The notes under the pieces: model-generated
Database searches by the model: none
Told to the model about the DNA's origin: nothing
The model's input: only the letters and a program-made list of their open reading frames with translations
Program-made: the position numbers and the translations under genes
Assembly: GCA_021613535.1 (NCBI GenBank)
Contig: CP075492.1
Location: forward strand, 310,001 to 374,000
Direction of reading: 5' to 3'
DNA length: 64,000 nt
From: Adineta vaga
Lineage: Eukaryota > Animalia > Rotifera
Shown: piece by piece, positions 1 through 62,777 of the stretch
How positions within the stretch are numbered: the stretch's first letter is position 1
How the letters are laid out: the number at the start of each line of letters is the position of its first letter

Positions 1-2608
1 AAATTCCATAGTTGACAAGTGTCTGGTAACTTATTGACGATTAGATTGACCAGTTTCGATGAACAAGTTTCACCTAGAATAGAAGTTTATTCCTATTGTT
101 TCTGATAAGTTTCGGATAAGTTTTACTAACCACCAGTAGTAACTGAGCGCAGATACTTCAAATTCTTGAAATCGCTCTGTGTACTCAGAAAAGTAAAGAA
201 ACTGTGAAGCAAACTTGGAACAGTCGTAATCGAAGTAATTTGTTTGTCTTGAATAATATTGAGCAGATAGTCAAACTGAAGAATTCCTCTGGGACGTAAC
301 ATAACTAACGCACCTCCACTAGTCAGAGCACCCATTATATCTTGCAAATGATCATCAAAAGAGCAGCGTGACATCTGAAGAATTCTATCGTCTCTATTTA
401 TAATGTTTGTGAAACTTAATGAGTCTATCATATGAGTAATATTTCGATGACGAATTTTGATCTACAAATAAGTAGAAAAATCGCTGTTAGACTTTTCCGA
501 TTACAATATATTGTTTCACAAACCGCTTTCGGTACTCCAGTTGAGCCACTTGTAAAAATGATGTAAGCAATATTTTTTGGTGTTACTACAATGTTTGACA
601 ATTGATCACAGCCAATATTATTTTGATTGTCATTATTAGTTAATATTAAATCAACATTCACTACGATTGTTTCATTATGTATCATAGTCTTTGTTAACCA
701 ATGAGCAATAACAAGATGACTTTGAGTCTGCTCGACAAGTGTATGCAGACGATATGAAGGGTCTCGAGGTGATAATGGACAATATACACCACCTACCATT
801 TCTATTGCCATTATACCAATTACCTAGAATGAACAACAATTTCTCCTAAATTCTAAGAGACACTCTTCTCATTCATCAACTTACCATTGATATACTTCTC
901 TCCACACATTGACAAATAATATCACCAACATTTACACGATATTCATTCAATAGAGTCAAAGACAATACTTGAACATAATATAACAGTTCACAATATGTCA
1001 ACGACTGTTCATCTAGTTCCACAGCTAACTTTTGTGAATAGATCATCGCTTTAGAAACAAACTCATGATGAATACATTGGACAGATGGAAATGATATTTG
1101 TGTATTATTCATTGATTGTACAAGTAATTGTTCAGTTGGTAGTGTTAATGATAATTCATACAGTGGTTTCTTCGATTGACTATCAATAATAGATGCACAT
1201 AGATCATACAACAGTGAATGAAATTGTTGTGAAATCTTATTCACAGTTTCCACGTGAAACAAATCCAATGATGCATCGATTGTACATGAAAGTTCATTAG
1301 GATCCAAAGTATGATGAAAAGTGAGAATAAAATCAAATTTACTCATCACTTCATCTTCACTAATCTCAATCGAATATGGTGCTAAAATAAGTTCACTATC
1401 ACCAAGATTTACTTTGTCTTGATCGTCATTTGTCATCGATGTTATAAACTGGAATGATGTATCAAGAAATGCAGGATTTGATAGATGAGGATGTTGTGCA
1501 AGAATACGTTGAAGTGGAAAATATGAATATTTCATAGTATTTGTCATCAAGACTCGCATTTGTTGAGTGAATTGATGAAACGAAGAATGAGGATCAAATT
1601 GACATCGAAGAGGAATAGCATTGACAAACATTCCAATTAGAGATCTAAATTCATCTCGATAACGTCCATCTGTATTCATTCCAATGCATAGATCTTGTTC
1701 TCCATTGGTTAATTTGAATAAGAAGATGAAATAAGTCATGAGTGACAAATAGTCAAGTGACATGTTATTTGTCGATGCATATGTAAGAAAGTATTGTGAA
1801 AGATCTTGTCCAAAATCAAACGAAATAGATGTTCCACGACCAGTTCGATGTTCATTTGCAAGACGATATCGATCATATGGTAATGAAAGAGATTGATCAA
1901 GTTTACAGTCATGGAGAGCATCAAGCCAAAACATTTCTGCACCAGTCATTGGCATTTGTTTTTCGATAGCAGCATCTATATAGAAGAACAAGTGACAAAT
2001 GAGAAAGAAAACGTGCGATGTTGAGGATGTATACTTACAATCAAGATAACGAAGGTTCGTTTCATCATTGTTGTCGTTAAGTAATTGACTTGTTGTATAT
2101 GCTTGATTAAGATCATGAAGAAATATATGCATTGATGGAAAATCAAATGCTGCATGATGAAAATTGAAGATGATTATATCTTTATGATGAAGTAGATGAT
2201 CGGAAGAGATGTGTTTGTAATAGACAAGATGACATCGAAAGACAAGACCTTGAGTAAGATTGAAGAGTTGAGGATTTCGTTTTTCTTCATGTATGATATT
2301 GTTGAGTTGTTGTTGTGTTTCATAAGTACTCTCAATAAATGTAAATAATGTCTTTTGATCTGTGGTAATGTCTATGATTCGTTGCATCAATATATTTTTA
2401 TCTTTGTCGAAAATGAATGCTGTATGAAGTGCAAGATGTTTGCTGATAGTGAGATCGAGTGCATGTTGAAGTTGTTTGACTGATATAGTATTGTTTGTAG
2501 AAAGGTGATAAACGAAAGGCATGTTATAGATTGCTACTTGTGGTTGATCAAGATCGAATCGCATCTGTTCACCGAGCCAAATGCGAGCTTGTGCATATGA
2601 TGCTGGTG
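1..2608 (-). CDS. NRPS module 3: C domain and N-terminal part of the A domain (truncated by the window edge)
   Basis: C domain with HHAAFDFPS. A domain with YIIFTSGSTGVPK, SFDDHLQD and SVTTGGE. The last exon (73-1) reads ETCSSKLVNLIVNKLPDTCQLWN. Confidence 0.88.
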
Positions 2609-5600
2609 CTATAGTTATCATAGCACATTTGTGTAAGAATAAAAACGCCAATGATGTAGAGGTGCTGAGGACGCACTCTCCCGAGTGATAGTTTCATGGG
2701 GTGTCTCTCTCTCTTTTACAAGTACGTTCAGTATTCATGCGAGTGGTAGCTAAGTACTCTCTTCAAAGATGAGCTATGGATAAAAAATAAAAATATATGA
2801 GTGGCCTAAATCACTCCACAGTTATATCAGAAGTGCCTGTAAAGTATTTTTAAATACTTGAAATATTTAATACGATTATCCTTTAGAACTCTAATTGAAG
2901 TACAGAGTGAATTCGACGTTAAGTAGCGATCCAGTAAGTTTCAGCTTTTATATAGAAAATACTTCACCATGTCTCTCTTTCGATATATATATTTACACTA
3001 ATCCCAAGGGGGAAAAAGCGGATTTAAATCAGTTAGAAATCAAATTTAAATCAAACAAATCACTTTAAATCAATTAAATCACCTTAAATCATTTGAATCA
3101 CTTTTAAATCAATTGAATCATTTAAATCACTTCTAAATCAATTAAATCATTTAAATCACTTCTAAATCATTTAAATCATTTAAATCACTTCTAAATCATT
3201 TAAATCATTACAAAAACTCTATGAAGTTATTACTGCAACTAATACAGTTAAAACATATCACACTTGTACACGTTACTGGATGCTCATGTGATATTGCGGA
3301 GCGAAAATAACTATTTCTTCGGTTTGATTTTATGACAAACATGTGCTTTCTATAGTCGTATAATATCTCGATACATAATTTCCTTTTGTCTGTCTACTTG
3401 AAATCTACTAAGACAGAACGCAAGAGAATTTTTTTTCGGTTCGTTGTTATCAGTAAGACGGAGAAATAAAGAGAAAATATTTTCTCTTCTTCTCGATTCG
3501 TTGTCGCATGTTCATTTTCATCTCATCGATATTCTAATTCAATACGTCTTCTATTCATTTGCATCCTATATACGAACTATTGTATTCTACGTACAAACAA
3601 TATTGTCTAAGAAAATAAGGAATTGAAGAAATAAATCATTTATAAGAATTCTTTTCATTTAGCAACGATTGATTAAGTTCGAAGATGATGAGTTCTATAA
3701 CGTCATACATTAATTTGTTGCGGTTCAACTATTAAACATTTTCAACTATTAAAATGATTATAATATAAGCAAATAAGTGATATATGGCAGTGATCATCTC
3801 AAAATATATTCCATGCGTTCCTGATCGATTCTTTTGTTATTTATTATATCTTCTTTGATGAATTCAAATTTCAGATGACTTTTCCTCTTCCAACTAATTC
3901 TCTTCTATTTTCTGGAGATTCATTCTACAGCATCGTTAAACAATTCTGTGGTGTTGAGGCGGTGGAATTACTTAAATTTCAGTTAATTGATACCTCAATG
4001 GATTTACTTGAAATCGATGATATCTTTTCCATTCTCTATTTCGAATCTGATCAAACTGATACGCTTAAACAAATATTAGGTTGTCCATGTAAAGATGAAT
4101 TTGGTAATTATTCATTCTTCGTTATGCCAGGAATTCGTTTGAAACTTAACAAATTTATTCATACACTTCGTTCTCTTCTACCAACTACTAATTCTGCATC
4201 GACTACCAAGTGCCTGACAATATCTTCTGATCTCATTCAACAATATCCGTTTCTGATTGATCTTATACATTGCCTCGAATCAAACTTATTCTCTAAATTT
4301 GTTTTGGACTTTGTTTCAAATATGACGTCGAATTTAACACGTTCAAAGAACTGCTTTCGTTATCAACAATCTGTGAAAGACTTTGCGACATGTCTTTACA
4401 TTCTGGGAGGAAGAACTGCATACGAGTTCATACGAATCAACATTCCAGGATCTATATCTAGTTTAACCAGCCTTCGAACAATCATTAGATCTTCAAAAAA
4501 TGAATATATTGAAGGTGAATTCTACTATGATCGTCTTAACTATTATATGGATTCGTTTAAATGCATATATGCATCCGTGGGAGAAGATTGTACTGGCGTA
4601 GTACAAAAAATACATTATGATGTTCATTCAAATTGCTTTACAGGATTCACGCTTCCACTTACAGATGGATTTCCTTCGACGCGATATTTCTCTACTGATA
4701 TATTAGCTGATCTTGAAATATGGTATAATCAGGTGGATAAAGCATCTCTTCTCAACGTATATGTCGTGCAACCGTTGTGTCCTACAACTCACACTTCACC
4801 CTCACCATTTATTCTATCAGCGTACGGTACAAACGGCAAGTATACCGCTCAAGACATTCTTAAAAGATGGTTCACCATATTTGATTCGTGTTTGAAGAGA
4901 AATATTAGGATACTCGCATTTTCAACGGATTGTGATCCTAGAAGCCTAAATGCGATGCGTAATGCAATGGGATTTTTTTCAAAATCAGTATTGCAATTAG
5001 AAGAACATCCACAGCATTTCGAAATTTCGTTTTTGAAGGTCAGTACACTATTAAAACGTTTAGGTTAAAAGCTATACGCTGGTTTTATTCGAAATATTTA
5101 GAAAAAAAATAATATCGTAATTATTTGAGTGGTAAAAAGATCTTAGACTTTTACAAACTTCGAACATTAATGAGACATTCTCGTGCAATAGAAAATACGT
5201 GAAGCTAACTGAATGGCCCTGATTTGATGGTTCCTTGTATTAGATAAGCTTAACTAAGTATAGCGATGAACTATTTTGTCAATCTGACGAAAAGCACCTC
5301 TATTTATATGCTAATTTTGTCTACTGATGAAAATCCTTCTACTTCGCAACAGCAGACACATGTGTTTGATCAAACATATACAGAATAGTCTGAAATATTA
5401 GAGGTGTTGAATGGTTAATAGCTTCTGCTAGTGGTGTTGTTTGAGTGAATAGCATCGTTTAAAAATGAAATGGGTATTTCATGACTGAATTTTGTTCCTA
5501 TCTCCCTGTTACGTATAAATAAAAATTTTTAAATTAAACTAATAAAAAACGAATCCAGTTTTCAATTCGACTTAAGAACACATGTTTTTATATTTTTATG

Positions 5601-7399
5601 AACTCTTTGATATTTTTTTCTAATATTTAGAATAGTTCATGGTTTTTTCTAAAACCACAACAACTTTTTGTCTGTTTTCAAGATGGTGTGCATATATGCA
5701 CCAAATTACGCAATCGTCTTTTGGATTCAGCAATTACACTACTGATAGGAGAAAAATATGCAAGTGTTGATTATCTTATGGAATTGATTAACAAATATTC
5801 AAAGCTCGATCATGCTCTAACAGTATCCGATGTCCTTCAAAACGATAAACAAAACTATTCATCTTGTGAAAAGATATCAAATGATGCTGTTCTTACTTCT
5901 CTTAAAAAAATTGCAAATTCTGAAGCATTACAAGCCTATCTACAAGTAATATTTCATCGATTTCTGTATTCATATAACTCACGAGAAACAATTTAATTCG
6001 ATTTAATCTTTGGTTCATTATAAAAAACAGTACTATGATGAAATCTTTTTTATAAGAATAGTCCTAAATTATCTTAAGGCTGCAGCTTTGATTCTGTCTC
6101 AAATTCTATGGAGTGCTTAAATATTTTTATTTAAATTTGATAGATTATTCGATTTGCTCGTTTGGCATTCGTCGAAAAACACACTTCTATTATTGATCGC
6201 TTATACTATTCGTGGACTGCTGTCTTTATAGTTCGTCTTTGGTCTTCATGGTTAGAAATTACAACTTATGCTGATCTAGAAGAGATAATGTCACATTTGT
6301 TACCATCCAATTCCATGGGATCTTTTTCTAAATCAAGCTTGTTCATAACCATGCCAGCTCTTTTTTCACTTGAACTAAATGTTCATAGCTTGACATACCT
6401 TGTAGTACTTGTATCAGAGCGAATGATAACTGAAGAAGCTCTAAATGTGTCGTTATATAATTCACAAATATGCGAGCAAACGTTCCGAGCGGCACGATCA
6501 ATGTCTGGTCCATTCTCATCTATTGTGAACTTTTCCGTTGATGAATTTCTTCAACGTGTCGAGAAACTAGCTGCTCTTCAAGCTATTAAATCTTCGTCTG
6601 ATTCTAATAATAACAACCTTATCTTTCCTAAACACCACAAACATTCACAACAAAAACATCAAGTACCTGTGATGAATATGACAACCGCGATCACAGAAAA
6701 ATTAATTCAAGTTACAGTTTTTAGTGCTTATCTTCAAGCTTGTCAAATTCTTTCAAGTTGCAACCTGTCGATCCTCAATCCTTATGATACAACTATATCT
6801 TTCGAAGAAGTGAATCATTTAGCATTTCAAAAGTTAACAAGATCACACTGTAAAACTTTTAGCCAGAAAGATTCTCAATTGAATAATAGCAAACAAGAAG
6901 ATGATGATGATTATGAAGAATATTTGAGCCAGAAACAGTCCAGTAGAAATAATAATTTTGATGACTACGATGAATCGATATCAAGTGATGAATCAAATAC
7001 TGATGTTCTTCCTAATGTTTCAAATTCAATATTTCGCGGAATGCGCATCTTTGACTCTATCAACAGCCATCAAAATGCATCGTTTTTTTCTGTTGAAGTA
7101 AATGGTCAGAAGAAATTCATGCATAAACAAGCTGCAAACTGGTATTTTTCCAAAAGAAAACCTACTTTATCTTCTGATCGATCAGTTAGAGTTCAAAAGA
7201 AGTGAATTATCTATTTCGTTTGTTTTCTACACATATACAATGTATGTGTATAATAAAAAAGAATGACCATTTCATTTTTCTCTTTCTCTAATTAACATAC
7301 TCAACTAACATGCAGTTCATCTTACGATAATAATACATATATCCTTAGCTAAAATGCTACTCAAAATAAAAAACATTTCATTCTAAATGTTTTCCTGAG

Positions 7400-7434
<35 letters not shown>

Positions 7435-10400
7435 CATGCATTAGATAAACTAAAATTTATGGCTTGTTTATCCTTCGATCCCTATGTTTTCGTATGTGCA
7501 GATTGATCGCTTATTTCGATAATTACTTGATAGACTAACTGGATAAAAATTAGCACGAACATTTATACGATACATGCATATTTCTAGGGAAATAGTAATC
7601 TTATGTCACCGTAAAGTCCTCATACGCTGCTCGATTTATATGAGTTTTAAACCACTTTAACTCATTTAAATCATTTAAATCATGTAAATCAAATAAATCA
7701 CCTTAACTCATTTAAATCAAGCAAATCATAAATCGCTTTTTCCCCCTCGACTAATCCCTTCGTTTTCTTTAACAAAGAAAGTAAATGAACTACATATACT
7801 ATAGGTAGAAGCAGAAGCAAATAAAATATATTCTCTATGAGAAACTAAAACGAACTAGATTTTGTCTTTCGAACACTCACAAATGAATCAAACAAGTGTC
7901 AACTATATATCTTTCATAGCTGCGATGGCTAAGTGCTTATGTTGTTTAAGATAAATTGAAACTATATTCTGTGCAAACGTCAGTGGCATCATTCATAGAA
8001 TAAATCTCAACAAATCAAGAACGAAATACTTCTCATAATTCTTACACTAGGGCATGGCCTACAATGTTAGTCACGATTTTAGAGAGGAGGAGTGCAAATA
8101 TCACTGTCTATAAAGAGAGAAAAGCTGTAGAGAGCAGTTTGATATGTAAATCATAACAATTATAGTTGTCATCTACACAAGACACGTCTATGAAAGATTA
8201 TTCGTAATATGGATCATCAACAACAATAAAATTTTAATCACAACAAGACAGAAACCTACCTTCACTTGTGATATTTGATTGTCGATCAAATATAACATCA
8301 TCGATTTCCTTAGCTTCCTTCGGCAATATAAGATCAAGTTTCGATACAGCTGTCCCACACATGTTCACTTCATCCACTATTCCATTCGATACAAACAATT
8401 GTTCAATACAATACGAAAATCGTTCACCTATATCTGTAACAGTTCCATCATCAAATAAATCATGAGAACATATAAAATACAATGATAATCTATTGTTTTG
8501 TAATGTTGGATTATAAACAAATGTTAACATGAAATCAAATTTAGCTATTTCATCTGATTGTTCTAATGATACTTCTTCTAATTTTGTATCATTCATCGAT
8601 AAGGAACTCTCACTTTCAGATAAAGTGATAAAATCGAACATTGTTTCCAAAAATGTAAGATTCGATTGGTTGGCATGAAAGTCATTAAGAATATGTTGAA
8701 GTGGATAATGAGAATGTTTAAGTATTGATAAACACATTTCTCTTACAGAATGAACAACTTCATCAAATGACCAATCTCCATTGAGTTGAATACGATATGG
8801 TAATGTTGCTACAAACATTCCTATCATATTATACAATTCAGATCGATATCGATTGGCATTTATACTACCAACACATAAATCAGTTTGATTGTGAGATAAT
8901 TTAAATAGAAATACATAAAATATCGATAGTCCAAGTTGAAAAATGTAAGATGATGTGATGATGCATAGTTTAGAAATGATGTACATGTAACATCATTTAG
9001 TATTATTTGAGTTGTAGCACCTAAGCCAGATCGATGATGAATTGATGAACGAGATCGATCATATGGTAATGATAATGAATGTTGAAGATCACATCCTTGA
9101 AGTTGAGAATACCAAAACTCACGAGATAAGGTCATATCCATGACATGTTCATGAACAGAATAATCAACATATTGAAATGAATTGTCATCTAGAGATAGCG
9201 AACTATGATCTTGATAAGCAAGAGAAAGATCACGAATAAAGATTGATGTTGATGCACCATCAAAGAAAGCATGATGAACAGTAAATAATATTAAATCATC
9301 TCTATTCAACATATCATCTTCTTCATTTGAACTGTGTGTGTGAGAACGAAGAATATGACAATTAATGACATGTCCTTTTGATAAATCAAATAAATCACAT
9401 TTATTCAAGATTCTCTTCACAATTTCATTCATATCGCCATCTTCTCTGGAAACATTCACTATTGAAAAACCAAATGTTTCACTATTATTGCTTAAAGTAT
9501 TCATATCTCGACAATCTTGTACAATAATACCATTTTGATCAAGATAAAGTGCTGTTCTCAGAATCTGATGTTTTCTAATGATACATTGATATGCATGATA
9601 TAATCGTGAAATTGATATATGATGGTCATTTATCGATGATAGACGATATATTAATGGAATAACATACATATTTGTATTGTTATCTGTCGAAGAAGAAGAA
9701 GAAGAAGAAGAAGAAAATCGAATATTTTCATCTAAGAAAATGCGTTCTTGAGCAAAGGATGCTTTCGCTAAAGTGAGAAATAGAATGTGGTTATTAGAGT
9801 ATTTTTGAGATTATATTTGTTACCTGTAAGGATATTTAATGAATGCCAAGAATGATCATCTTTACTCAATTCGGTATTGAGAATCTGATGAATAAGTTTT
9901 GCATGATCAATGATAGTTGGATGTTGAAATAGATCAGTAATAGCAATGGAATTTATTTCTAATCGAAATTCTACTTTATAGTGATGTAGAAGTTGCATAA
10001 TAATTAATGAATGGCCACCAATAGAGAATATGTTTGTATTAGTAGAGATTTGTTTTTGTTTCAATAGATCACACCATATATGATGAATAATAGATTCAAT
10101 TTTATTTGTTGGTTCTACTAAATCGTTAGTATTGTTGAGTTTAGTTGAAGAGAGAACAAGGGAATCAGGTGAGGGCAATCGTTTTCGATCAATTTTTCCA
10201 TTTGGATTGAGAGGTAATTTATCAAGAATAATGAAACGAGATGGAATCATATGCGGTGGAAGATGTGATTGACAATATTCATGTAATTCGTTTTCGCTGA
10301 TGACTGAACTTTGAACATAAGCAACTAAATGATCTTCACCCCATTTCACCACAACACAAGTAGATATCGATGTAATACTAAGTAGGCATCGTTCAATTTC

Positions 10401-19400: not shown

Positions 19401-21398
19401 GATTTTTTTTAGCCAACATTCTGTTTCTCGCTGAAAGGTTTAGAAACAAGTATAAAATCTCAGATTCAAGGGAAGAGAAAATTGGGTGATGATGGAAATG
19501 GATGGGTGACAACAGGCACAGCTTGGTACAATATTTCATCTGAAGCTTCATTCATGTAGTTTCCAAAGAACTTTAACTCAACTGAAATCAGAAATCGCTC
19601 TTATCCTCTATTTTCACTGTTCAAATGTTTATGAATCACAATGTGGATCAGACTCGATTGTATGACCATTTTTATTAGGTTTGTCCGTTTGCTTAGTTTG
19701 TAGCGAATTATATCCTCTAAGATATTATCGACAAAGATTTTAATGAAAGATTGGTATTATATGTCTATATTAGTCCGTCACCGTGAGTATCAACATTATC
19801 TAATCGAAATAAAAGAATATACCTTCATTTTCAATAGTTTGTAATCTAAAAAAGACAGCTCTTTTTATTTCGTCTATATCTTCTGGTAAGACGAGTGATA
19901 GTTGGTAAATAGGCATGTCAGAGTGTCTAGTAATTGAGTTATCGAGTGCTTGAGAACCGAAAAGTTGCGTCAGTATGTGTTTAAAACGCTTTGCAAGTAG
20001 ATCAACATCAGTTTGATTTTGATATATATCAGCCGAACAATCAAAAAAACATTCGATACTCTTTGCATGATGATCATGTGATATTGTAAGAAAGGTATCA
20101 AATGCCACTACTCCATTTCCATGGAGTCGATCTCGATCAAAATACATACCGAGATCAATATCACCATCTATAGTGAATTCTTTATTATTTTTTGCTGTTA
20201 ATGATGACACTAATGATTCATATTGAAATAATATTGATGGTAATGCTTGTTGGTCTCGTTGTTCATATGAATTAATAATATGCTGATAAGGTAAATAAGC
20301 ATGTTCTAGAATATTGTTACTTAATTCTTGTACTTTTCGTGTAAGATAACTAAATGAACCTTCTGGTTCCATTTTCATTCGATATGGCACAACGTTAACA
20401 AACATTCCGATCATATTTTCCATTCCTTGAGATCGATTTGCCATAACACTTGCTATACATAAATCATTTTTATCATCATCATTGACTAATTTCATTAATA
20501 ATATATAATAGCAAGCAAGACATAATGAAAACATAGTAATATTATTTTCTGTAGCATATAGTGCCATTCCGTCAACAAGCTGTTGATCTAAAGTAAATGC
20601 AACTGAGTAGCTACGACCAAATGATTTTTTATTTGTTTTATTTTTATTAGATATAAAATCTTGTGTTTTAGTCCAATCGTATCCATTCATAAGATTGGAC
20701 CAAAATCGACGTGCTTTATTCATTTTAGAATCTGTACTTGTATCAGCTAACATTGCCTGTTCATATAATGCAACGTCGATATATTGTGGAATCAACAATG
20801 TTGGTTGCTGATGACGATTAATCCAACAAGCTTGTTTAAATGCTTGAATAAATGGTTTAGCTGAATTAGCATCCAATGCGATATGGTGAAAACTAATAAC
20901 AATTAGATCATTTTCATGTAATGATACGTCATGATAATCGTCAGTTCGTTCTATTATGTGACATCGTAAAACTTTTCCTTTTTCCATATCGAAATGTTTT
21001 CGAACAGACTCATTTGTAAGAAGACGATCGAGTTCTTCTAATGTTGCAACATTTCTTGAATGTTCAAATGAATAAATAGCATCAACAAGAGGAAGAATGT
21101 ATTGTTTGATTTGATTAGTTTCCGGATCAAAACGAACAGCAGTACGAAAAACCATGTATTGTTCAATTAATATAAGTAAAATCGAATGGATACGTTCGAT
21201 TAGTAATGAACCTCTTTTGATTATGAATGGTACTATAAGATTATAGACCGATAAATCAGAAGATTCAAAATTAATCTTTTCATGAAGCCATATTCGTTGT
21301 TGAGCCAATGAAGCAATAGTTTCTGTTCGACCTGAAATTGTGAGTTTTGGTTGTTTACGTACTTTTGTTTCGTTTATGACATATTGACGTGAAAACAT
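1..21398 (-). CDS. Multi-exon, multimodular nonribosomal peptide synthetase (C-C-A-T-C-C-A-T-C-C-A...), continuing past the left window edge
   Basis: The ORF fragments join in frame across GT-AG introns at 19822-19337, 18766-18704, 17615-17555, 17254-17201, 16869-16811, 15805-15750, 14241-13341, 12770-12708, 11616-11559, 11258-11205, 10876-10829, 9823-9768, 8259-2609, 2038-1976, 884-824, 523-462 and 130-74. C motifs: ASxAQxRIW/F and HHxxxD. A motifs: YIIFTSGSTGVPK, NLYGPAE, YRTGD, GRKDFQIKLHGQRIELGEIE and NPNGKIDRK. T motif: IFSIGGHSL. There are two 1-nt homopolymer deletions, at ~15449 and ~8941. Confidence 0.9.
3005..7749 (+). mobile_element. P-superfamily DNA transposon (4745 bp) inserted in an NRPS intron
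   Basis: TIRs CAAGGGGGAAAAAGCG (3005-3020) and CGCTTTTTCCCCCTCG (7734-7749). 8-bp TSD ACTAATCC at 2997-3004 and 7750-7757. The empty site with a single ACTAATCC is visible in the paralogous intron at ~13737. Subterminal TTAAATCA arrays at both ends. Confidence 0.93.
3875..7205 (+). CDS. P-element/THAP9-type transposase, 3 exons (3875-5038, 5631-5945, 6144-7205), ~846 aa
   Basis: Phase-0 GT-AG introns join the three ORFs with no stops. P-transposase-like motifs: AYEFIR..IPGS.SSL.SLR, FSTDCD, QDGVHICTKLRNRLL, DKQNY and SQICEQTFRAARS. Confidence 0.82.
8260..9767 (-). CDS. NRPS extra condensation domain exon (copy b; 1-nt deletion near 8941)
   Basis: Near-identical to 14242-15749, including a (GAA)9 poly-Ser tract. 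Contains HHAFFDGAS. Confidence 0.85.
9824..13340 (-). CDS. NRPS module 2: C-A-T (5 exons)
   Basis: C domain with HHAAFDFPS. A domain with TYDVHTME, SLCFGGE and YNIYAPAETTVV. The T domain (GGHSL) has the same protein sequence as in module 1. Confidence 0.88.
14242..15749 (-). CDS. NRPS extra condensation domain encoded by one phase 1-1 exon (copy a; 1-nt deletion near 15449)
   Basis: ASFAQERIFL...HHAFFDGAS...MIGMFVATLPYR. The exon is 1508 nt, or 1509 (3n) after restoring the A that is present in copy b. Confidence 0.85.
15806..19336 (-). CDS. NRPS module 1: C-A-T (5 exons)
   Basis: C domain with HHAAFDFPS. A domain with SFDIHVQE, SVCSIGDA and WNLYGPAESTIA. T domain with GGHSL. Confidence 0.88.
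19823..21398 (-). CDS. NRPS first exon: N-terminal (putative starter) condensation domain
   Basis: Motifs ASLAQQRIWL, HHIALDANS, QYIDVA and MIGMFVNVVPYR. It ends at GAAG|GTATATT, a phase-1 donor at the same position as in the later C exons. It is not similar at DNA level to the repeated C exons. Confidence 0.85.
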
Positions 21399-22495
21399 TT
21401 TTCAGGAAAATAAATCAATAAATTTTGATTAATTGAAAAAATGAATTGAAGAAGCTTAACAAAATCTAAAAGTTTAAAATAAGATTATAAAAACGAAATA
21501 GATATTTCGATTTCATTCGACTCCTATTAGAATACATGAGACAATAAAACATAAAAACTAATTGAATTATTGTGATATTATAATAAATATTCTAAAATAA
21601 GCATTAGTTTAGTATTATTAGTGAATTCAATAATCAAAATACATTTTAACTAAAAAGATATTTCGGCAGAAAATATCGCATTATTAAAATAAACATAAAA
21701 TACCACAGACAAAAGCACAAATATTGTCCTTTGTTGTTAGCGTCATTGGATATTACTTCATGACGCTACCTTCTACATAGTTGTTTTCTTTCTTTTCTAT
21801 ACATATATATACACATATATATGTATATCTTCTTTCTCTTTCTTTCCTGTCGTCTTTTAGTTTTCGTTGATTATCATGTCCGTTCTCATGATGATTTCTG
21901 TGATTGTATTTCTTCTTTGTTTTCTTCTCTTTTCTATTTTTTTTCTCAGATCATCTCTGATCTGTATTTATATTATTGTTTTTCTTTTTCTCTCGTCAGT
22001 CTTTTGTTATCATTTTCTTTAGTGTTTTATTTGATTTCATCCAATAAAACACCATTATCATCTTTCCTCATCTCATCCACATCTATTTCTTCATCTCCTC
22101 ATCCATTCCAGTCATCTCCGGTAGGATATTTGACGTGATTCTTGATTTCACATCAGATCATACTTTCGTATAGTTGTTCAGCTTACGATACATTCGTTAG
22201 CTGGAGATTCATCTTCATCCCCTGATATAAGAGACTCACATTTGTCAATAAAATTTACAGAGAGTATCTTTGAAACAATTTTGTTTTGATATAATTTTTG
22301 AAGAATGCTAAACTTCCTAACACTGATTTAGCATTTTTCTGAGTTTATGAAATTTACTTTAGAGTTCTCGGGTTTTAATGACATAGAATCTTATGACTAC
22401 TTTTACAGTGCGATGTTTGCTAGGTGTTAAGATTAGTATATGAAAAAGAGTACAGACTAACTGATTATTGATCTATGTTCGAATGATTAAAAAAT

Positions 22496-25400
22496 TTAAT
22501 TTTGATCATTTAAGAGGAATAGCTGAGCATCGACAATACCAGAATGAGTTTTTAATTGTTCTAACATTGCATTGGCAATATTTTCTTCTTGATGTTTCTG
22601 AATAGCCACTAATTGATAAGGACCGAGTGGTTGAATACGACGCATTTGTGAAATTAGTTCTTGAGCACATGCTGATATGATATTAGTACTAGATGATTCC
22701 GTAATTGAAGGCATTTGTAACATATAAATAGTTTTGCTCGATAGTTTACTAATGAAAAATTTTGAAAGATTATCAATATTAGCATTTCTTGCTGTGTCGA
22801 TAATACAAAAATAAATAGAAGAACTGCTATTTTGTTGTGATTTTTGAAGACAAATAACATTGTCTATACCAGTAAATGTTGAATTAGTAGATAATTTAAT
22901 ATCATTTTCATTAATAATATCAATATCTGTATCACTTTCTTTCGTATTTGATGAAGTAACCTGTTGTCGTCGTGTATGAAGTTTGTCATAAACTAATGTT
23001 GCAATTGATTCAATTGAAAGTCCTTGAAGTAGATCAGCTATTGGTATAAAAATACTTGTTTCTTGTCCTAACCAATTATATAATGATATGGCAGCTAATG
23101 AATCCATACCTTGACTAATAAGTGATTTATCAATTAAAATATGATCATTCGTAGATGCACCTAAAAGTCGCGTTACAGTTTTCTGTATTCGTTCAATAAT
23201 AGTCTCTTTTCGATTATAATCAAAATCGTTTGTTTTATTTATTTCTGACGATGATAATATATCATTCAATTTCATTGCAAGAGAACGCTTTTCAACAATT
23301 TCAGTCAAATAAGATGTTGCTAAATTATGACGATTTTTATATAATAATTTCCAATTAACAGCAAAAATAACTGGATAGGAAGATATATATTTATATTTAT
23401 GAATACGTTCAATTAATTCAAATACACTTATTGTCGGTACCATATCAAAACCTTCTGCCATTTTTAAAGTAATAAGTGTATCACGATGTCGATGAAACAT
23501 TCCAGCACCACTAACAGCTGGTAAGCTAATTGAAAGAGCTGGTAAATTAAGTTCTTTCATACGATAATTTGCAAGTGTATCAAGAAATTGGTTACCAGCA
23601 TTATAACCACCAGATGATATGTCAAGTAAATGGTTTCGAATTGATGAAAACATAATAAAAAAGTGAATTGGTGTATGAGTAAGTTGTGTTGCTTGATGAA
23701 GATTCCAAGCACCACGAACTTTAGCTGGTAAAACACGTGAGAAATAATCTTGTGTTAAATTATATAAACTACGATCTTCTGATACAACAGCACTATGAAT
23801 AATACCTCGAACAGGATAAGATGTTTGATTAAATTTTTCAATTAAATTATAAACTTGTTGAAAATTTGTTACATCAACTTGAACAACATCAACCTGAGCA
23901 TGATATTTATTGATTGTCTGTTTTAATCGTAACCAATCATTATATTGTGGATTAGAAGGTTGTTCAAGTTCAATTAATGTTCGACGGCTCATAAGTGCTA
24001 TGTGCTTAACACCCCGCTTTTCTATCATCCAACGAGACATTGTTAAACCAAGACCACCAAAACCGCCAGATATAAGAATTGTTCCATGATTACATACATC
24101 CGAAGAAAACATTTCATCATTATTATCTAAAAATATTTATTAAATATAACAAAATAGGAAAACTAGAAATTACCTTCAATCAGAATTATGCCGATTAGAA
24201 TTGCTTAGTATTCAATGCATAGTGGTTCATCAGAGTTAGTTAATCGAATAACAGTTTTTGCCTATAATATTCCACTACTCAGTCTTGTCATAAATGCTTC
24301 GATTATCTTGGAGTTGGCTCATAAATGACTGTTGATTCAACTTGGTTTTAATCTACCTTGAACAATTAAATCCATCATTTCTTGTAACATTTTGTGCAAA
24401 TACAATTTAGTTGTGAGAGGGCGAGCGAAACCAAATCAATACATGTAAGCTACAGTCTGATCGCAATTCAAACATAGATAAATCAGTTTTACCAAAAATA
24501 TCTCGTTTACCCCATTCAATAAAATGACCATGATATGCAAGTAATTTCATAGACTCTTTTAATAATGAACCTGATAATGAATTAACAATAATGTCAACAC
24601 CATTAGGTAAAATATGCAGTATATCATCAACAAAACTCATATTTCGACTATTAAATACATGTTCAATACCATAATATTCACGAAGAAAACGTCGTTTTTC
24701 TTCTGTTCCAGCTGTGGCTATAATTCGAGCACCAATTAGTTGACAATATTGAATACACATTTGACCAGCAGCTCCTGTTGCAGCATGAATAAGAATTGTT
24801 TGATTACGATGAAGATTAGCACGATATTTAAGTGAATAAATAACTGTCATACATGGAACAGGCATACCTGATAACTGTTCATAAGTAAGAGGACATTCTG
24901 CTGGTATACGTATTATATTGATCGAATCAACAATAACATGTGAATGAAATACACCATCAGTAGAGATACCTAAAATATTATCACCTACTTGATATTTAGT
25001 AGTAGGACATGCACGTACAACAGTACCAACAAAATCTGAACCCGGTTCAGTATCTCGATTAACTAATGGTTGATCTTGATCAGATTGTGCAAAAATACGC
25101 GTATGAGGATAAAGACCACGTGCTTTGAGTACATCACGGAAATTAATACCAACACTATGAATACGAACTTCAATCTTGCCTGGTGGTAATTCATGAATTC
25201 TATTCTCTTTAATCCATGTTAAATCAGCAAGAAAACGAGATGTTGGTACACAAAGACGAAATGGATGTTGATCAGCATCTTGCTGAGGAATAATAGGAAT
25301 AGCTTCTAGTTTATTCATTTCAAGATTATCATCATTTACTTGTTGTAACATTTCATAATGCCATGTTATATATTTGATTTGATTTTGATTTTGATTTGTA

Positions 25401-28400
25401 TCAAATTTAAGTACAATTTCACAAGCTTTATTTGAGGATCGAGAATCAATCATATATTGAATTAAAGTTTGAATAAATATTGGTTGATTAATTAATGTTA
25501 ATGATGGTGCTTGTAAATCAATAAGTTTTAATCTATTTCTCTCATATTCAGTTACTAAACTTCGTACAAGACCAATTAGTGGTGATGTAATTAGATTACA
25601 ATTGAAATTAAGATTTAATTGAGCATTATATGTAATAACATATACAAATGGATAAAAATCAGGTGATATTGTCTGAATTGTTTGAAGAAGTAATGACATA
25701 GTACCACATATTGTTTCCTCTTGTTGCTTAAATGCTAAATTATTCTTATCATTATTATTATTAATATCAAGTAATATTTGTTCCAGTGACCATGCAAATA
25801 TAATATACACCTGTTTATATGTTTTTATTATGACTTCGATTGCAGAACGAATGATTTCTAAAGTTGTATTACACATATCAAAAACTCGAACATTTGAACA
25901 GGGTAAAAATGATTTTAAAGAAAGACCAAAACTCTGATCGTTATCATTAGTAAAAAGAACCCATGCTTGATTTTTTCTTTCATTAAGTGTTTCTAATATC
26001 TCATTTGATTTAGTTTTTTGACATACGATTATTGTACTTTCATATTGACTTGATATTGGTTGAATATTTGACAATCCACCAATTTCTTCTAAAATTGTAA
26101 TCCATTGTTGAATATTATTTATTGAACGAGTATTATCAGTTGTTAATGACCACCATTGATCAAGTAAACCAAAAATCAGATCAAAATAAGCAGGTATCTC
26201 ATTTGTTAATTCAAGTAATACAAATAAACCATTAGGAATTAATAAATGACGAAGATTGATTAAAGATTCTATTAAATCTTCTTCATCACTACCTTGAAAT
26301 TGATTTGCAGCAAATATAATATCAAATGTTTCCACGGGTATTTTTTCAAATGTTTTACTATTAAATACATTAATTGTATGATCATATGTAATAAATATAT
26401 GAGTTGATTGATGATCATCTAAATATTTTTGAAATACTTGTTTGGCTTGTGCAAGTTGTTCAGAATCTGTATTGATATAATGTAAGTCTATCCACAGATG
26501 TGTTTTAGTTGATAGACTATGAAGAAGATCGAAAATAGGTAAAATATCAAATAATCATTATGACTTAACCAAAGTATATGCAAATGATAATTATTAAGTG
26601 AATTTGTTATATTATTATTTTGTTGAAATTGAAGAAGATATTGAAAAATAATATGAAAAATTTGTTGAGTTTTGATTAAACTAAGAATAGTTTTTATTTG
26701 TTGGAATGTGTGTTCAGTTTCTTTATTACCTAAAAATACATCTGTACCGGTTTGTTTTCCATAAAAAATATCTTTTAATTGTGAACCATAATTATTTAAT
26801 GCTATTAACAATGGTTTAAGACGAGGAAACTGTTTATATAATTGTAACAGACGAAGTTGTATCGAATGCTCTGTTATTTGTTTATTATGTACGTACAATG
26901 CAAGAGATTGACATGCATTTAATAAAGGATAATACTGTTGATCAATAACACTAATATCCAAATCTTTTAATACCAATTGTGCATAACAGGCAGCTAATTC
27001 ATTGAATGGTTTTATTGAATCAATTAAATCTTGATGACTAACAGTATTTATATTTGCATTAAGTATTAGCTGATTTGGTGAAGGAAACAGATAAGCTATA
27101 TTCTTTATTAATACTGATTCATCCCATATTCGTTGCATACAATAATCTTTCATTATTATGTCTAAATATTCATCATGATTTTTATTAGGTAAATCAGTTA
27201 TTGAATTTAATTTGTCAAATATAGATTTTTCTAATGTCCATTGACCAGATTGAATACCTTGTACTTGTTGAATAGAAAAACCTTGAAAAATACATACTGA
27301 ATCTTCTATTTTCATGCCATTTGGAGTCACTACTAAATCAGCAGTATATGTTTTTTCAACACTTAAACCATATACATCATCATAATAACTTGCACGCATT
27401 TCTACATTTGTGTATGAAGATAGATTATGATTAGATTTATTTTGAGTAATAAATTTGTCAATACTAATTGGAAGAAATGTTGTTTCATTATCAGGTAATA
27501 AAGCTAAAAGCGGATGAAGACATGCATCTAATAAAGATGGATGAATTAAATAATAAGAAGAAAGATTATTAATTTCATTAGAATTTTTATGATTAATTAT
27601 AGCATTTACTTTAGATGTTGTACCATGTAAAGATTCAATATTTTGAAATAAACTTCCATATTGATAACCTCGTGTTGATAAATGTGTATAAATATTAATT
27701 GGTTCATTTGTAGACCATATATTATGAGTTAGATTAACATGCGATGGAATCTTTATTTTTTGTTGATTGTTATTATCTATTTCAATACGGCCATATGCAT
27801 GTAAAGTAAATTGTTTTAATGAATATTCACTAAGCTTTTCTTGATCAAGAAAAGAATCAATAACATCAGTACCTAACATACCTGATGTACGCATACAATC
27901 TGAACCAGCTCCTGACCATGGTCGACTATAAATATTCCATTCACGCATTGGCATATTAATTTTTGTAAATATTTCTGTTAATTCATGTTCAGTTAGAATA
28001 AGTGCTTTAACAAATTTTACTTGTTCAAAAATGATTGTTGGCTGTTTAGCATTAATTGTTGATGATGAAAGTAATTGATGACAAGCAGCTGTTGCTAATT
28101 CAAGAAAAGCAACAGCAGGAAAAAGAATAGCATCTTGAATTTTATGATCTTTCAGAAAAGCATATTCTGGTAGGTTAATATTAATAAGACTTCTCCATGT
28201 AGGATCCATTTGTCCAGTTAATTGTCTTACACCAAGTAATGGATGAGTAGGTATACGATTAGCTAAACGTTTCATAACTGAATCTTTTGATTCATACCAA
28301 CATAATGTATATCGAATGTATATAGAGGAAATCATCAATAATAATTCATTTTCTTTCGAAGGTAAATATACATCACGAGTATCGAAAATATTGTTTCCAC

Positions 28401-31259
28401 ATATCAGATGCTGTTAATTGTGCTAGACTAGTGAGTAATGTTATTTGTTCATTTTCTTTTCGTTTTAGTGTTGGAAGTATAAGTGGTGACTGGCAATTGA
28501 TTAATTCATAACATTCTCGAATAGATGTTGCTAAAACTGGATGTGGTGAAATTTCAAGGAAAATATTTGCATTATTATCTTGTTGAATACATTTTATAGC
28601 ATCATAAAACCGAACACATCCTCGTACATTTGTCCACCAATAATGAGCATCAACGGGTGTTTGTTCATTTTGTTTCTTACCAAGAACACTTGAATAAAAA
28701 TGAGCTTGTGCACATATTGGATTAAACATTTGTTTTGGATCTTTTAAAGGTAATCCTCGAACGTCTTTCAATGATGAAAGCATTTCTTTTTCTATATCAA
28801 ATCGATCCATTTGATATGAATGAAATGCATTTTCTATACGAAGACGAGCTTTAAAAACATTTGGATACAGTGTTGAAAGAATTTCTTCTAGTTCACCAAT
28901 AGTTTTTTCATCACCACTTAATGTTACCGATCGAGGACTATTAACAACAGCAATACAAACAAGATGTTCAATACCTTTGAGAAGTTTTTCTTGTATTTCT
29001 TCTTCACTCATCGAAACAGCTAACATACGACCGCCTTGTCTTGTATTACGATTTTGAAGACGTGATCGATGATAAACAACACGAACAGCTTCTTGTAAAC
29101 TAAGACGACCAGCAACAAAAGCAGCTGCTTGATCACCAGCACTATGTGATATAATACTTGATGGATAAATATTCCATGAAATAAGTAAAGCTGCAAGAGC
29201 AACCTGAATGGCAAATAAAGCTGGTTGAGCAATATTTGTATCATTAATACGAGATTCTTCTTCAGTTTTTTTTTCAATTAATTCTTCTAATAGTTTCCAT
29301 TCACCATTATTAATTTTATTCATTTCTTTATCAATCAATTCAATCCATCGAGTAAAAACAGATTCACTTTCATATAATTGTCGACCCATTGCCCACCATT
29401 GTGGACCTTGTCCACTAAAAACAAAGCATATTTTTGATAGTGGCGTTTCCGGACGTAATGCTGTTGAAAGACCTGATGATGATTGTTCAGCAAGAAATGC
29501 ATTTATTTGTTCCTGAAGTTGCTTACGATTTGAGAATATAAAAATAACTATATGTATATAACTAATTGTTCGTTTGAGAAGAAGTTGTTTAGAAGTACGT
29601 TGAAGAAAAATATAATCATCATCTATATCTATAAACGGCTTTCTTTCTAACCATCGATTGAATGCAGTCACTTGATCATAAAGAGATTTGCGAGCTTTTG
29701 CTAAAAATATAAATAAATTCTTTCGTAAATTATGAAAATAGAAACAATTACAATTTACTTGAAAAAATAAAAGTAAAATATTGTTTGGTTTCTTTATGAT
29801 ATCCATTGATATGTTGTTCTTCTCCAAATCCGTCAACAATAAGAGAGTTTTTCTTTGGTAGATATTCTTCAATAATAGCATGTGTAGCTGTACCACCCAT
29901 GCCAAATGAATTAACACACATAGCAACGGGTTGATCATTATTATTTGATGGAAATGGTACTTCATGTTGAACAATATGAATATTGTAACGTTGTGCTTCG
30001 ATTTTTGGATTTAATGATGTAAATAGCATATTTGGTGGAATACTTCGATGATGCATGCACATAATAACTTTAAGAAGTGATGCAACACCAGCTGCACCTT
30101 CAGTATGTCCTAAATTACTCTTAAGTGAACCAATTAATAATGGAGGATCAAGCTTCGAACGATTAAAAAACCGGCCTAAACAATTTGCTTCAATAGGATC
30201 ACCAACCGGTGTACCTGTACCATGTGCTTCAATATAAAAAATACGTTGAGGATCAAAATTTGTTCTTCCATATATTTGTGATAGTAATCGTGCTTGACCG
30301 ATACCTGATGGTACTACATAACTATTTTTACCTTCATTTCCATCATGACTGCTGAGTATATCATGAATAATACAATATACATGATCTCCATCGCGTTCAG
30401 CATCGCTTAATCGTTTTAATAAGACAAGACCAAGACCATCACCTAGAAAACATATGAAAGACATATATTAATAAATAAGTGAATATAATTTTTGTCTACT
30501 TTTTGCATAACCATTAGCATCAGCACTAAAAGATCGGCTTCGTCCTTCAGATGATAGGGCACCAATTAATGAACTTTTCAATAACTCTTCTGGTGAAGAT
30601 ACACTGTTGACTCCACCACATACAGCCATGTTGGCTTCATTTGCACGAAGACTTTGTACACCTAAACGTACAGTTTCCAATGATGAAGAACAAGCGACAT
30701 CTAATGACACGTTTGGACCTTGTAGATTAAAATGATAAGCCATTCGAGCTGCAGCATTGTACAATAAACCATTTGGACCATGAAATCTTGATCGGTTTTC
30801 AGGCTCCATGCGAAATGTTGTAGCAGCATGATCTATAGAATACTGTCCGATGTATACCGATGTTTGTGTACCATACATCTTTTCAATACTATAACCAGCA
30901 TCATTAAGTAAATGTATAAATTTGAGCAATAGTAATCGGTGACATGGATCAATGGATCCTGCTTCAGCATCTGATAAATTAAAGAAACTTCCTTCGAACA
31001 TGTCCCATTGGTTATTTGATAAGAAATAACCGCCACGAAGAATTTTCTCCTGAAATTGCCCATTATTATCCATATTGAGCATATGGGCAGCATATGATAA
31101 TAGATCAAGTCGATTACGTGGTATTTCACTACCAACATCCCGACTTTCTACTAATGCCCGCCATAAATCATGTGCTGAATGTATATCACCAGCAAATTCA
31201 CAAGCTGTACCTATAACAGCTATCGGCTCCAGTTGATTCGTAGAAGTAGATGGTGACAT
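22496..31259 (-). CDS. Reducing type I polyketide synthase (FAS-like order KS-AT-DH-pseudoMT-ER-KR-ACP-pseudoTE), with apparent frameshifts
   Basis: KS: DVACSSS, HGTGT, KSNLGHTE. AT: GQGPQW, SHSAG, AFHS. DH: HPLLG, DHKIQDAILFP, DACLH. ER: LIHAATGAAG. KR: ISGGFGGLG, YNAGN. ACP: GMDSL. Introns at 30499-30443, 29758-29701 and 24173-24127. Indels at ~28320-28390, ~26551 and ~24180-24440. Confidence 0.9.
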
Positions 31260-41797: not shown

Positions 41798-42733
41798 TCA
41801 GTTTCTTAAACGATTTCTTGCTATTATAATGGAAGCAATAGCGTTTCTTTGTCGTCGATTCAACCGAATAATCATTCGTATTTTCGATCGAAGTTCAGCT
41901 AATGCAGCCATCGATACAAAAGGAATAAATAATGTTACAAAGTAAGAGAAAAATAAAGTAACTAAGAAGAAATCCGTACTCACATCACGTGATAAACCAG
42001 CTGTATAAGCCGTATATAAAATTATAAATGGAAAGAAGAAAATAAAATAAAGAGCAGATAACACTAGTAATTGAAATAGCATCTTGCTGTAATTTCTCCA
42101 TTGAAATTGTTGACCCATTCGATATTTGCTATACCAAACACGTCCAATGAGTAATAAACTGAAAATGACAATCACAAAACCTGGTGTAATTAAGTCAACT
42201 ATACTATCCCACATAGCCAATGTTGGATAAATATGTGGACAATAATAAAGTCCGCATATTGTTAGGCTATAATCGTAAGGAACTTCACATGGTAACACCA
42301 AAAACATAAAAGTATAAAAAATAGATGGATAAATACTACAGAGAATCAATGGGAAATAATGAAAAACAAAACATTTGAATGGTGTTGAAGTTAAACTCTG
42401 ATGAAAAATGAGAATATGTCGTTCAATTGATGCCCAAGCCATGAGAATTGTTATTGATGGAGGTAACGTATAATCTATCCATACCCATATGAGACAAAAT
42501 GTGGGTGATGATACTAACGCTGTATGAGTACGATAGTAGTGCATGAACCAGATAAAATCAGTAACCATATAGCAAAGACCGAAACAATGAATGAGAATAA
42601 TAACATGATTGTGAAGACCTTTCCGTAGTGTTCGATCCATGAGAAAATAATACAGATTGAAAACATAACATACAATCGATGGAATTCCAAAGCTTAAGAG
42701 AAGCCAAAAGGAAACAATATTTGGTATTGCCAT
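41798..42733 (-). CDS. Rhodopsin-like (class A) G-protein-coupled receptor, single exon
   Basis: 311 aa with seven hydrophobic segments. TM3 ends in WASIERH (DRY-equivalent), and there is a Cys at the start of TM3. Confidence 0.85.
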   Translation of the reverse strand: MAIPNIVSFWLLLSFGIPSIVCYVFNLYYFLMDRTLRKGLHNHVIILIHCFGLCYMVTDFIWFMHYYRTHTALVSSPTFCLIWVWIDYTLPPSITILMAWASIERHILIFHQSLTSTPFKCFVFHYFPLILCSIYPSIFYTFMFLVLPCEVPYDYSLTICGLYYCPHIYPTLAMWDSIVDLITPGFVIVIFSLLLIGRVWYSKYRMGQQFQWRNYSKMLFQLLVLSALYFIFFFPFIILYTAYTAGLSRDVSTDFFLVTLFFSYFVTLFIPFVSMAALAELRSKIRMIIRLNRRQRNAIASIIIARNRLRN

Positions 42734-62183: not shown

Positions 62184-62777
62184 TCAACCGACTATGGAGC
62201 CGAGTAATGACGTATCATTTGTACATCTAAGTGAACCAGTACCAATTGTAAACCATCCTGTCTTACATTTTCTACATTTTGTTTGTTGAAATAATGCATT
62301 ATATTCACCAATAGGACACGGTAATGGTTCGTTTGTTTTATCTAGACAGTAGTGTCCTTGGGGACATTTGACACAGTAAGTTGATCCACTATATTCGTTG
62401 TAGTAACCTTCCTTACATGGACGGCATAGCGTTTGTCCAGGTTGATCAGTGTAAGTTCCAGGAGGACATTGCAGAGGAAGAACAGAGGCATCGGATGAGT
62501 AATCACCCTTATATGTACGGAAGCAGAATGATGATCCTTCATACTCAGTATAATCACCAGGGGGACATTTTCGACATTTCACTTGACCATAGAGATTATT
62601 GTAGGTACCTGGTGGACACGCCATTTTTACACCATTCGAGCAATAATGGCCTTTATCGCAACGATAGCATTCTTCGAAATCGGTACTGTAATACTGGCCC
62701 GGTGAGCAGGTATTTTGTGCTTGCACGATAAAATCAACAGAATACAAGAGATAAAAATTTATAATGTGAAGAAGCAT
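62184..62777 (-). CDS. Secreted cysteine-rich protein with ephrin-receptor-like (GCC2/GCC3) repeats
   Basis: Hydrophobic N-terminus from the ATG at 62777. Repeated CPPGTY...CxxCxxGxY units. No TM segment seen. Confidence 0.75.
   Translation of the reverse strand: MLLHIINFYLLYSVDFIVQAQNTCSPGQYYSTDFEECYRCDKGHYCSNGVKMACPPGTYNNLYGQVKCRKCPPGDYTEYEGSSFCFRTYKGDYSSDASVLPLQCPPGTYTDQPGQTLCRPCKEGYYNEYSGSTYCVKCPQGHYCLDKTNEPLPCPIGEYNALFQQTKCRKCKTGWFTIGTGSLRCTNDTSLLGSIVG

Follow-up and report, generated by a model that had tools for sequence, protein, structure and literature searches.

A polyketide synthase with a remnant thioesterase and a nonribosomal peptide synthetase with a dedicated first condensation domain in Adineta vaga: candidate head of a two-protein lipopeptide assembly line

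Introduction

Bacterial lipopeptide nonribosomal peptide synthetases (NRPSs) are lipoinitiated by starter condensation (C) domains, as in the systems for surfactin (SrfAA), daptomycin (DptE/DptF to DptA) and calcium-dependent antibiotic (CDA), and the docking domains of bacteria are short and helical. In fungi, a highly reducing polyketide synthase (PKS) acts in trans with an NRPS in emericellamide synthesis (EasB/EasA), and single-chain PKS-NRPS hybrids such as PsoA also exist; PsoA was found in our PDB search as entry 9x29. Here we describe a stretch of 64,000 nucleotides of the bdelloid rotifer Adineta vaga (Chrom_3:310001-374000; hereafter the window, with positions counted from its first letter), in which a PKS gene and the beginning of an NRPS gene both lie on the minus strand.

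Among animals, bdelloid rotifers alone are known to carry bacterial-type NRPS/PKS clusters by the dozen. These sequences are specific to bdelloids and were gained by horizontal transfer (PMC11258130), and PKS-NRPS hybrids in bdelloids have already been described (PMC11258130, PMC10531068). The open reading frame (ORF) coordinates in the window are identical to those of Chrom_3_350 to _357 in Supplementary Data 9 of Nowell et al. 2024 (PMC11258130), the PKS ORFs being Chrom_3_352..357, and the locus is catalogued there as region3.1:225210..345004 (intact, 20965 aa, NRPS_term). The window is the 5' end of this published subtelomeric cluster and the cluster itself is therefore not new, in agreement with the first-pass annotation of this DNA, which had not counted the mere presence of NRPS/PKS genes in bdelloids as novel. 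A paralogue on chromosome 5 (cluster 5.2, AVAG|g48151) is a pathogen-induced PKS-NRPS cluster (PMC11258130), which means that a relative of cluster 3.1 is switched on against a fungal pathogen; it is 47% identical to the window in its first C domain and 55% in its KR-ACP tail. In the publication all C domains are labelled Condensation_LCL, the main text has 0 instances of the word 'thioesterase', the supplements have it as GO terms or BLAST labels only, and the text mentions no truncated thioesterase, no separate clade of first C domains and no two-protein reading. New here are a conserved stub derived from a thioesterase (TE), a clade of first C domains (C1), the two-protein reading and the frameshift clusters. 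Given the published cluster, this is a gain in detail and not a discovery, modest but testable.

The locus contains a reducing PKS without a release domain, a conserved dead half-TE, an N-terminal C1, a conserved junction between the two genes and separate reading frames. We propose, with a probability of roughly 0.55, that the window covers the first part of a lipopeptide assembly line made of two proteins, in which the PKS hands its acyl chain to C1. Prediction of the product (a lipo-undecapeptide or a plain peptide) hinges on whether there are one or two enzymes and on how the acyl chain crosses between them, and heterologous expression of the pathway rests on the same two answers. The conserved dead half-TE and the dedicated first C domain are concrete pieces to test.

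The PKS ends in a remnant thioesterase

The PKS starts with an ATG at 31259 and is coding down to 22499. Pfam searches, run exon by exon, matched KS, AT, DH, ER, KR and acyl carrier protein (ACP) domains, with a degenerate methyltransferase-like region (pseudoMT) between DH and ER. The catalytic motifs DVACSSS, HGTGT, NLGHTEG, SHSAG, HPLLG, YNAGN and GMDSL are all in place, and by its domains and motifs the protein is a type I, fully reducing megasynthase of the fatty acid synthase (FAS) kind.

Behind the ACP follow a linker and a segment with RRIQPLGPYQLVAIQKHQ, and the protein stops 35 residues further on. The first-pass annotation had described the PKS as ending in an ACP (GMDSL) and a TE-like stub without GxSxG, which is what we find: the tail reads RRIQPLGPYQLVAI and runs into the stop at 22496-22498. 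Pfam (E up to 10) and NCBIfam searches of the stub gave no thioesterase match and no PF00975. A scan of the whole genome (6 contigs, 100.8 Mb in total) with PF00975 matched the tail of the PKS at C6:1.59M (85.8 bits) and none of the stubs. The tail of C6:1.59M, which stands alone and is the most distant PKS paralogue, reads ...MKRIQPTGPYYLLGYSFGG... (GYSFGG) and continues as a full TE, and the stub aligns with this intact TE column for column. In an alignment of 49 ACP tails (A. vaga paralogues, A. steineri, Rotaria, metagenome and Logan proteins), GxSxG was confined to the TE-intact clade and the stub had VAIQKHQ at the elbow position. IxQMRRIQPxGPY was nearly invariant among the stubs, and about 40 bdelloid homologues end at the same alignment place, just past the LLLLD strand. 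The Asp and His of the triad and the lid, all of which belong to the C-terminal half, are absent, the protein stopping ~35 residues past the elbow position.

AlphaFold2 on the same alignment predicted a confident ACP (helices at residues 14-99, predicted local distance difference test (pLDDT) about 90-96), a disordered linker and a beta-alpha half sandwich (pLDDT 83-95). The best Foldseek matches of the ACP-plus-tail model were the PCP-TE didomains of EntF and SulM, and those of the stub alone were the TEs of human FAS and Pks13, with 21-22% identity to the human FAS TE over about 125 columns. The TE origin of the stub is assigned because of its homology to the intact TE of the paralogue and its fold, and not because of a profile match. 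Sequence and model together indicate a truncated, catalytically dead descendant of a thioesterase, and the earlier claim of a dead TE is borne out by the loss of both the nucleophile and the half that carries Asp and His. With the ancestral TE cut to its dead N-terminal half, the PKS therefore has no release domain of its own. Because it is kept in shape across genera, the stub is more than a relic. One tentative and rather doubtful role would be that of a C-terminal adaptor: the half alpha/beta-hydrolase would tether the PKS to its acceptor, which would be C1 in NRPS-linked clusters. If true, this would be an animal trans-acting PKS-to-NRPS lipoinitiation interface unlike the bacterial docking domains mentioned above.

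The NRPS starts with a distinct condensation domain

The NRPS had been annotated as beginning with a distinct C domain (HHIALD), and indeed its ORF opens with an ATG at 21398 and a Pfam Condensation match. A quick IQ-TREE analysis of 59 C domains, with two bacterial NRPSs as outgroup and support from the Shimodaira–Hasegawa-like approximate likelihood ratio test (SH-aLRT), gave three rotifer clades, C1, C-alpha and C-beta, each with a support of 100. C-alpha groups with C-beta as its sister (94), C1 branches outside this pair (80) and the rotifer domains stand apart from the two bacterial NRPSs (99). All members of the C1 clade in this tree are the first domain of their own gene. The best bacterial matches are 22-29% identical; PDB sequence searches with C1, C-beta and C-alpha returned the same generic C domains, and NCBIfam was likewise non-discriminating for subtype.

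No upstream A-T exon before C1 is indicated by the conserved Met or by the gene models that start at C1. The Met start is common to three A. vaga paralogues, residue 1 starts C1 in the A. steineri models P0086, P0087, P0088 and P0243, and C1 homologues match from residue 1-30 of their proteins. Of the motif HHIALDA, HH..xD is kept in the PKS-linked subclade and the Gly of HHxxxDG is not conserved; the second His is gone in two distant C1 members.

The exon carrying C1 ends with ...LPEDIDEIKRAVFFRLQTIENE-G and a phase-1 donor (GAAG/GTATAT) at 19823. C-alpha exons end in a similar way, with GAAG/GTAGGT, and C-beta exons start with TATAG/CACC, also in phase 1. An RNA contig joins the end of the C-alpha exon (14242/8260) to the start of a C-beta exon, and an RNA contig also shows the 63-nt intron within the C-beta that comes after C1 spliced out. 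Judged from these sequences, C1 would hold the position of a C-alpha ahead of the first C-beta. Here C1 is followed by this second C-like domain and then by A-T; the next domain varies between loci, being a whole C-beta in the window, half a C-beta in the chromosome-6 loci and A directly in the A. steineri contig L034. The C1-A order of L034 is the one that a genuine starter C has. The role of starter C given to C1 in the first-pass annotation is supported by its distinct N-terminal clade and by L034, where it leads into A, but is weakened by the C-beta that follows it in the window. In the chromosome-6 paralogues C6:13.60M and C6:13.75M (L028:2103-4742 and L016), C1 shares one uninterrupted ORF of ~915-928 aa with the beginning of A and with no more than the C-terminal half of C-beta, whose N-lobe has been lost.

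The same annotation had counted at least three amino-acid modules. These modules are present, but the count is an underestimate: the catalogue carries the NRPS another 85 kb beyond the window start, and ~11 modules are counted from the table of PMC11258130. Each module has two C-like domains between T and A, that is T-C-C-A in place of T-E-C-A. C-alpha has the canonical HHAFFDG and C-beta HHAAFDF, and no epimerase model matched either of them. An epimerase assignment for the domain after T was dropped, as this domain starts with the C-type motif SFAQERIFL, has no E-model match and is sister to C-beta.

Stub and C1 stay together at several loci

The genome was queried with KS, the KR-ACP tail and C1. 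The stub followed by a co-oriented C1 at a distance of 0.3-2.6 kb was found at six A. vaga loci, including the window (C3:0.34M; the other five in Table 1), and at C4:14.90M the PKS and its NRPS point in opposite directions. Homologues bear the names of Adineta vaga, A. steineri, A. ricciae, Rotaria and Didymodactylos. The A. steineri contig L034 carries ER-KR-ACP-stub and then the C1 that is joined directly to A. On the A. steineri contig L035 (CAJNOE010000687.1, 6870-26244) the order KR-ACP-stub-then-C1 occurs three times, between partial DH/ER and C-beta pieces, and the contig looks like a mosaic from repeated recombination that always retained the stub-C1 junction. The sole PKS paralogue with an intact TE, C6:1.59M, has no NRPS domain in the 8 kb downstream. 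Conservation of the PKS-NRPS adjacency, which the first-pass annotation had named as a check of its proposal, is thus found in both A. vaga and A. steineri.

Two polypeptides are likelier than one

The annotated pair of co-oriented, intron-containing megasynthase genes 1.1 kb apart is there with all these features, on the minus strand and with a spacer of 1,097 bases. The RNA evidence consists of assembled contigs from four runs over 18500-24400, from which neither strand nor transcript ends nor absence can be read; they are taken as RNA because the runs show spliced joints elsewhere. Contigs X1 and X2 run unspliced across the PKS stop, colinear with the genome over 22024-22663, and contigs from these spliced runs extend at least 470 nt past that stop. 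Transcribed sequence reaches ~21584, which is ~190 nt short of the C1 start, and there may be read-through or polycistronic transcription of PKS and C1. In run X5 the spacer at 21584-22472 is the sole covered part, with an A/G-rich low-complexity stretch at 21790-22150; the covered spacer may be a long 3' untranslated region, read-through or a separate small transcript. One RNA contig that reaches 24346-24393 derives from a paralogue. No single spliced or continuous PKS-NRPS ORF was found in the window, where the stop is conserved, the spacer has stops in all frames and the contigs are unspliced. Because the stop after the stub and the Met of C1 are conserved and the RNA contigs are unspliced, two polypeptides are likelier than one hybrid.

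Proposed hand-off and alternative explanations

In the proposed assembly line, protein 1 would be an iterative, fully reducing, FAS-like type I PKS that builds a saturated acyl chain on its ACP, and protein 2 a giant NRPS (about 11 modules) that begins with a Met of its own and the dedicated N-terminal C1. The acyl-ACP of the PKS would serve in trans as the donor for C1, which would acylate the first amino acid (lipoinitiation). The TE remnant and/or the ~25 N-terminal residues of C1 may help the two proteins to dock. The chain would then move along the repeated C-beta-A-T-C-alpha modules, and the product would be an N-acylated peptide of about 11 residues.

Several points weigh against this proposal. 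The hand-off from ACP to C1 is itself inferred; a complex prediction for C1 with the ACP-stub scored 0.01, alignments not being used, and it speaks neither for nor against binding. The C1 motif is HHIALDA and not the canonical HHxxxDG, and C1 is followed by C-beta and not by A, so that either C1 or C-beta may be the domain that condenses. The stub-type PKSs at C3:16.50M and on the Rotaria contig L036 have no NRPS within 8-10 kb; therefore a dead TE alone does not imply a hand-off, and the idea that the stub is always paired with an NRPS was rejected. Conversely, a second C1 subclade heads NRPSs without any PKS, and the closest A. steineri relative of the window C1 (P0086, on L033) has no PKS upstream, where one had been expected; PKS fragments lie downstream only. 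The RNA contigs of the four runs give zero cover over C1 (19485-21454), which is a weak objection: this hole says little given the use of contigs, low expression, cover pooled over ~11 near-identical modules and a PKS cover of 2-5. Lastly, compared with the intronless AT-to-ER ORFs of two paralogues, the PKS has about 12 indels of 1-2 nt in three clusters (Table 1). As to the lone stub-ending PKSs, they form a subclade (tail ...RRLQPRGPYSLISIDNES...; C3:16500095-16509075 and L036 of Rotaria sp. Silwood2) and need another way to unload.

Could PKS and NRPS instead be one co-translated hybrid, in which an intron removes the PKS stop and joins the ACP or the stub to C1? Cluster lengths in the published supplement generally assume cotranslation (PMC11258130), gene model g48151 covers both PKS and NRPS, and the A. 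steineri models P0005 and P0016 fuse KR-ACP to Condensation. The junctions of these two models differ, however, are mutually inconsistent and delete conserved C1 residues, whereas the stop after the stub keeps its alignment position in about 40 homologues and many gene models begin at the conserved Met of C1. Together with the unspliced passage of X1 and X2 over 22496-22498 and the stops in all frames of the spacer, this makes a hybrid very improbable. The two genes might also be neighbours by history only, copied as a block but making separate products, the acyl chain being released by a trans-acting enzyme. Stub-type PKSs without an NRPS must have such another outlet, C1-type NRPSs without a PKS exist, and all linked loci may stem from one ancestral arrangement. 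The stub-C1 junction has nevertheless outlasted speciation, many rounds of duplication, a divergence to 45-55% identity and rearrangements of its surroundings, with L035 retaining it three times; the one PKS paralogue with an intact TE is also the one without an NRPS domain in the 8 kb downstream, and with a C domain at its start an NRPS depends on a donor of an acyl or peptidyl group. We thus regard a purely historical linkage as quite improbable, and the two-protein assembly line with hand-off to C1 as the preferred reading.

A different challenge comes from the indels, which together with the missing cover over C1 and the low, patchy cover of the PKS could mean that the cluster head is decaying: the PKS would be a recent pseudogene and C1 silent, and downstream modules or paralogous clusters would be used. 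RNA contigs cannot show absence, however, all PKS catalytic motifs are intact, and the indels form tight groups within coding sequence that is otherwise well conserved, including the codons next to them, with several of the indels lying in A/T runs. The 97%-identical C-alpha copies of the NRPS carry different frame-breaking T-run changes, at 15451 (T4 vs T5) and at 8943 (T5 vs T6), which suggests residual homopolymer errors of the long-read assembly. The region is moreover listed as intact, with the warning that what look like frameshifts in expressed clusters may stem from the assembly (PMC11258130). No independent assembly of the locus turned up in an exact search with the KR-ACP-stub protein. 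The PKS frameshifts that the first-pass annotation had raised as a possible objection are present in this assembly; we consider them probably an assembly error, and decay of the cluster head unlikely. A GT..AG pair (GTTAAGT...TTCATAG, 53 nt, 26517-26569, minus strand) spans the ~26551 frameshift. It would restore the PKS frame at a cost of ~18 conserved residues, and may be a coincidence or a rescue by intron gain.

Other features of the window

The intron between modules 2 and 3 holds an antisense transposon with two ORFs (Table 1) of 397 and 347 aa, neither of which has a Pfam match. Protein-atlas features point to P-element-type transposases of Rotifera (score 0.97). About 25 genomic sites carry the two ORFs as a pair, the copy at C3:18.62 Mb being 99% identical, and the element has the look of a DNA transposon that was active until recently. 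No tailoring, transporter or phosphopantetheinyl transferase gene was found in the 33 kb of the window that lie upstream of the PKS, nor an acyltransferase/ligase shuttle gene. Besides the receptor ORF named below, this part holds only a TPR (56821-59970), an LRR (52105-53172), a FLYWCH (46994-47422) and an ephrin-receptor-like ORF (62187-62792). A weak rhodopsin-type seven-transmembrane (7TM) receptor ORF (41801-42733, minus strand) lies 10 kb upstream of the PKS, and the closest A. steineri C1 gene has a 7tm_1 gene (L033:1-237) at a similar distance upstream, ~10 kb; these 7TM genes upstream of both C1 loci may be a remnant of synteny.

Table 1. Features of the PKS-NRPS locus in the window, and further A. 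vaga loci with the same order
Feature	Position	Strand	Basis or remark
PKS gene KS-AT-DH-pseudoMT-ER-KR-ACP-TE stub	22496..31259	-	Pfam domains, motifs; stop 22496-22498
Intron in KS, GT..AG, 57 nt, contains in-frame stop codon	30443..30499	-	Paralogue with intron-like insert at same place
Four 1-nt indels, AT/DH linker	28310..28388	-	Versus two intronless paralogues
Single 1-nt frameshift, pseudoMT region (~26551)	26548..26556	-	Versus two intronless paralogues
About seven 1-2-nt indels, end of ER domain	24219..24440	-	Versus two intronless paralogues; no informative RNA cover
ACP (GMDSL)	22952..23209	-	Pfam PP-binding and ACP_SdgA_C
Thioesterase remnant, nucleophile-less, ~125 aa, contains RRIQPLGPYQLVAI	22499..22873	-	Homology, alignment, fold
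Spacer from PKS stop to C1 start, 1,097 nt, stops in all frames	21399..22495	-	Partly transcribed 21584-22472
First NRPS exon, C1 condensation domain (HHIALDA), phase-1 donor GAAG/GTATAT	19823..21398	-	Pfam; Met at 21398
Putative intron C1 to C-beta 1, 486 nt, GT..AG, phase 1 to phase 1	19337..19822	-	Splice-site types; no RNA-contig cover
Module 1: C-beta (HHAAFDF) - A - T - C-alpha (HHAFFDG)	14242..19336	-	63-nt intron 18704-18766; T-run frameshift 15451
Module 2: C-beta - A - T - C-alpha	8260..13340	-	94-97% identical to module 1; T-run frameshift 8943
Inter-module intron, 5,651 nt	2609..8259	-	Exon join shown by RNA contig
Antisense two-ORF P-element-like transposon in inter-module intron	3875..7205	+	ORFs 3875-5068, 6162-7205
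Module 3 start: C-beta and N-terminal part of A	1..2608	-	Gene continues past window
PKS-stub, 0.3-2.6 kb, C1, C-beta, A-T	C3:1.57M
Same order as at C3:1.57M	C3:19.94M
Same order as at C3:1.57M	C6:13.60M
Same order as at C3:1.57M	C6:13.75M
Same order as at C3:1.57M	C5:0.68M		Pathogen-induced g48151 cluster 5.2 of PMC11258130

Comparison with known systems

The rotifer PKS shares its domain order with animal FAS (KS-AT-DH-pseudoMT-ER-KR-ACP-TE), including the inactive methyltransferase-like region, but its TE is without Ser, Asp, His and the entire second half. The NRPS resembles bacterial starter-C systems in that it starts with C and has no A-T before it, in that a carrier-bound fatty acyl group would be the likely donor and in that C1 of A. 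steineri L034 leads straight into A-T. It differs from them in several respects. In the tree, where two bacterial NRPSs served as the bacterial reference, the rotifer C domains form a group of their own; the acyl group would come from the ACP of a complete FAS-like PKS, and in most rotifer loci a second C-like domain follows C1. With the fungal PKS/NRPS systems the locus has in common that a reducing, iterative PKS would supply the acyl part, and the order KS-AT-DH-(MT)-ER-KR-ACP. Compared with EasB/EasA of emericellamide, the 33 kb upstream of the rotifer PKS have no acyltransferase/ligase shuttle gene and the NRPS starts with C and not with T-C. Unlike in PsoA-type hybrids, the ACP and the C domain of the rotifer locus are probably on different polypeptides.

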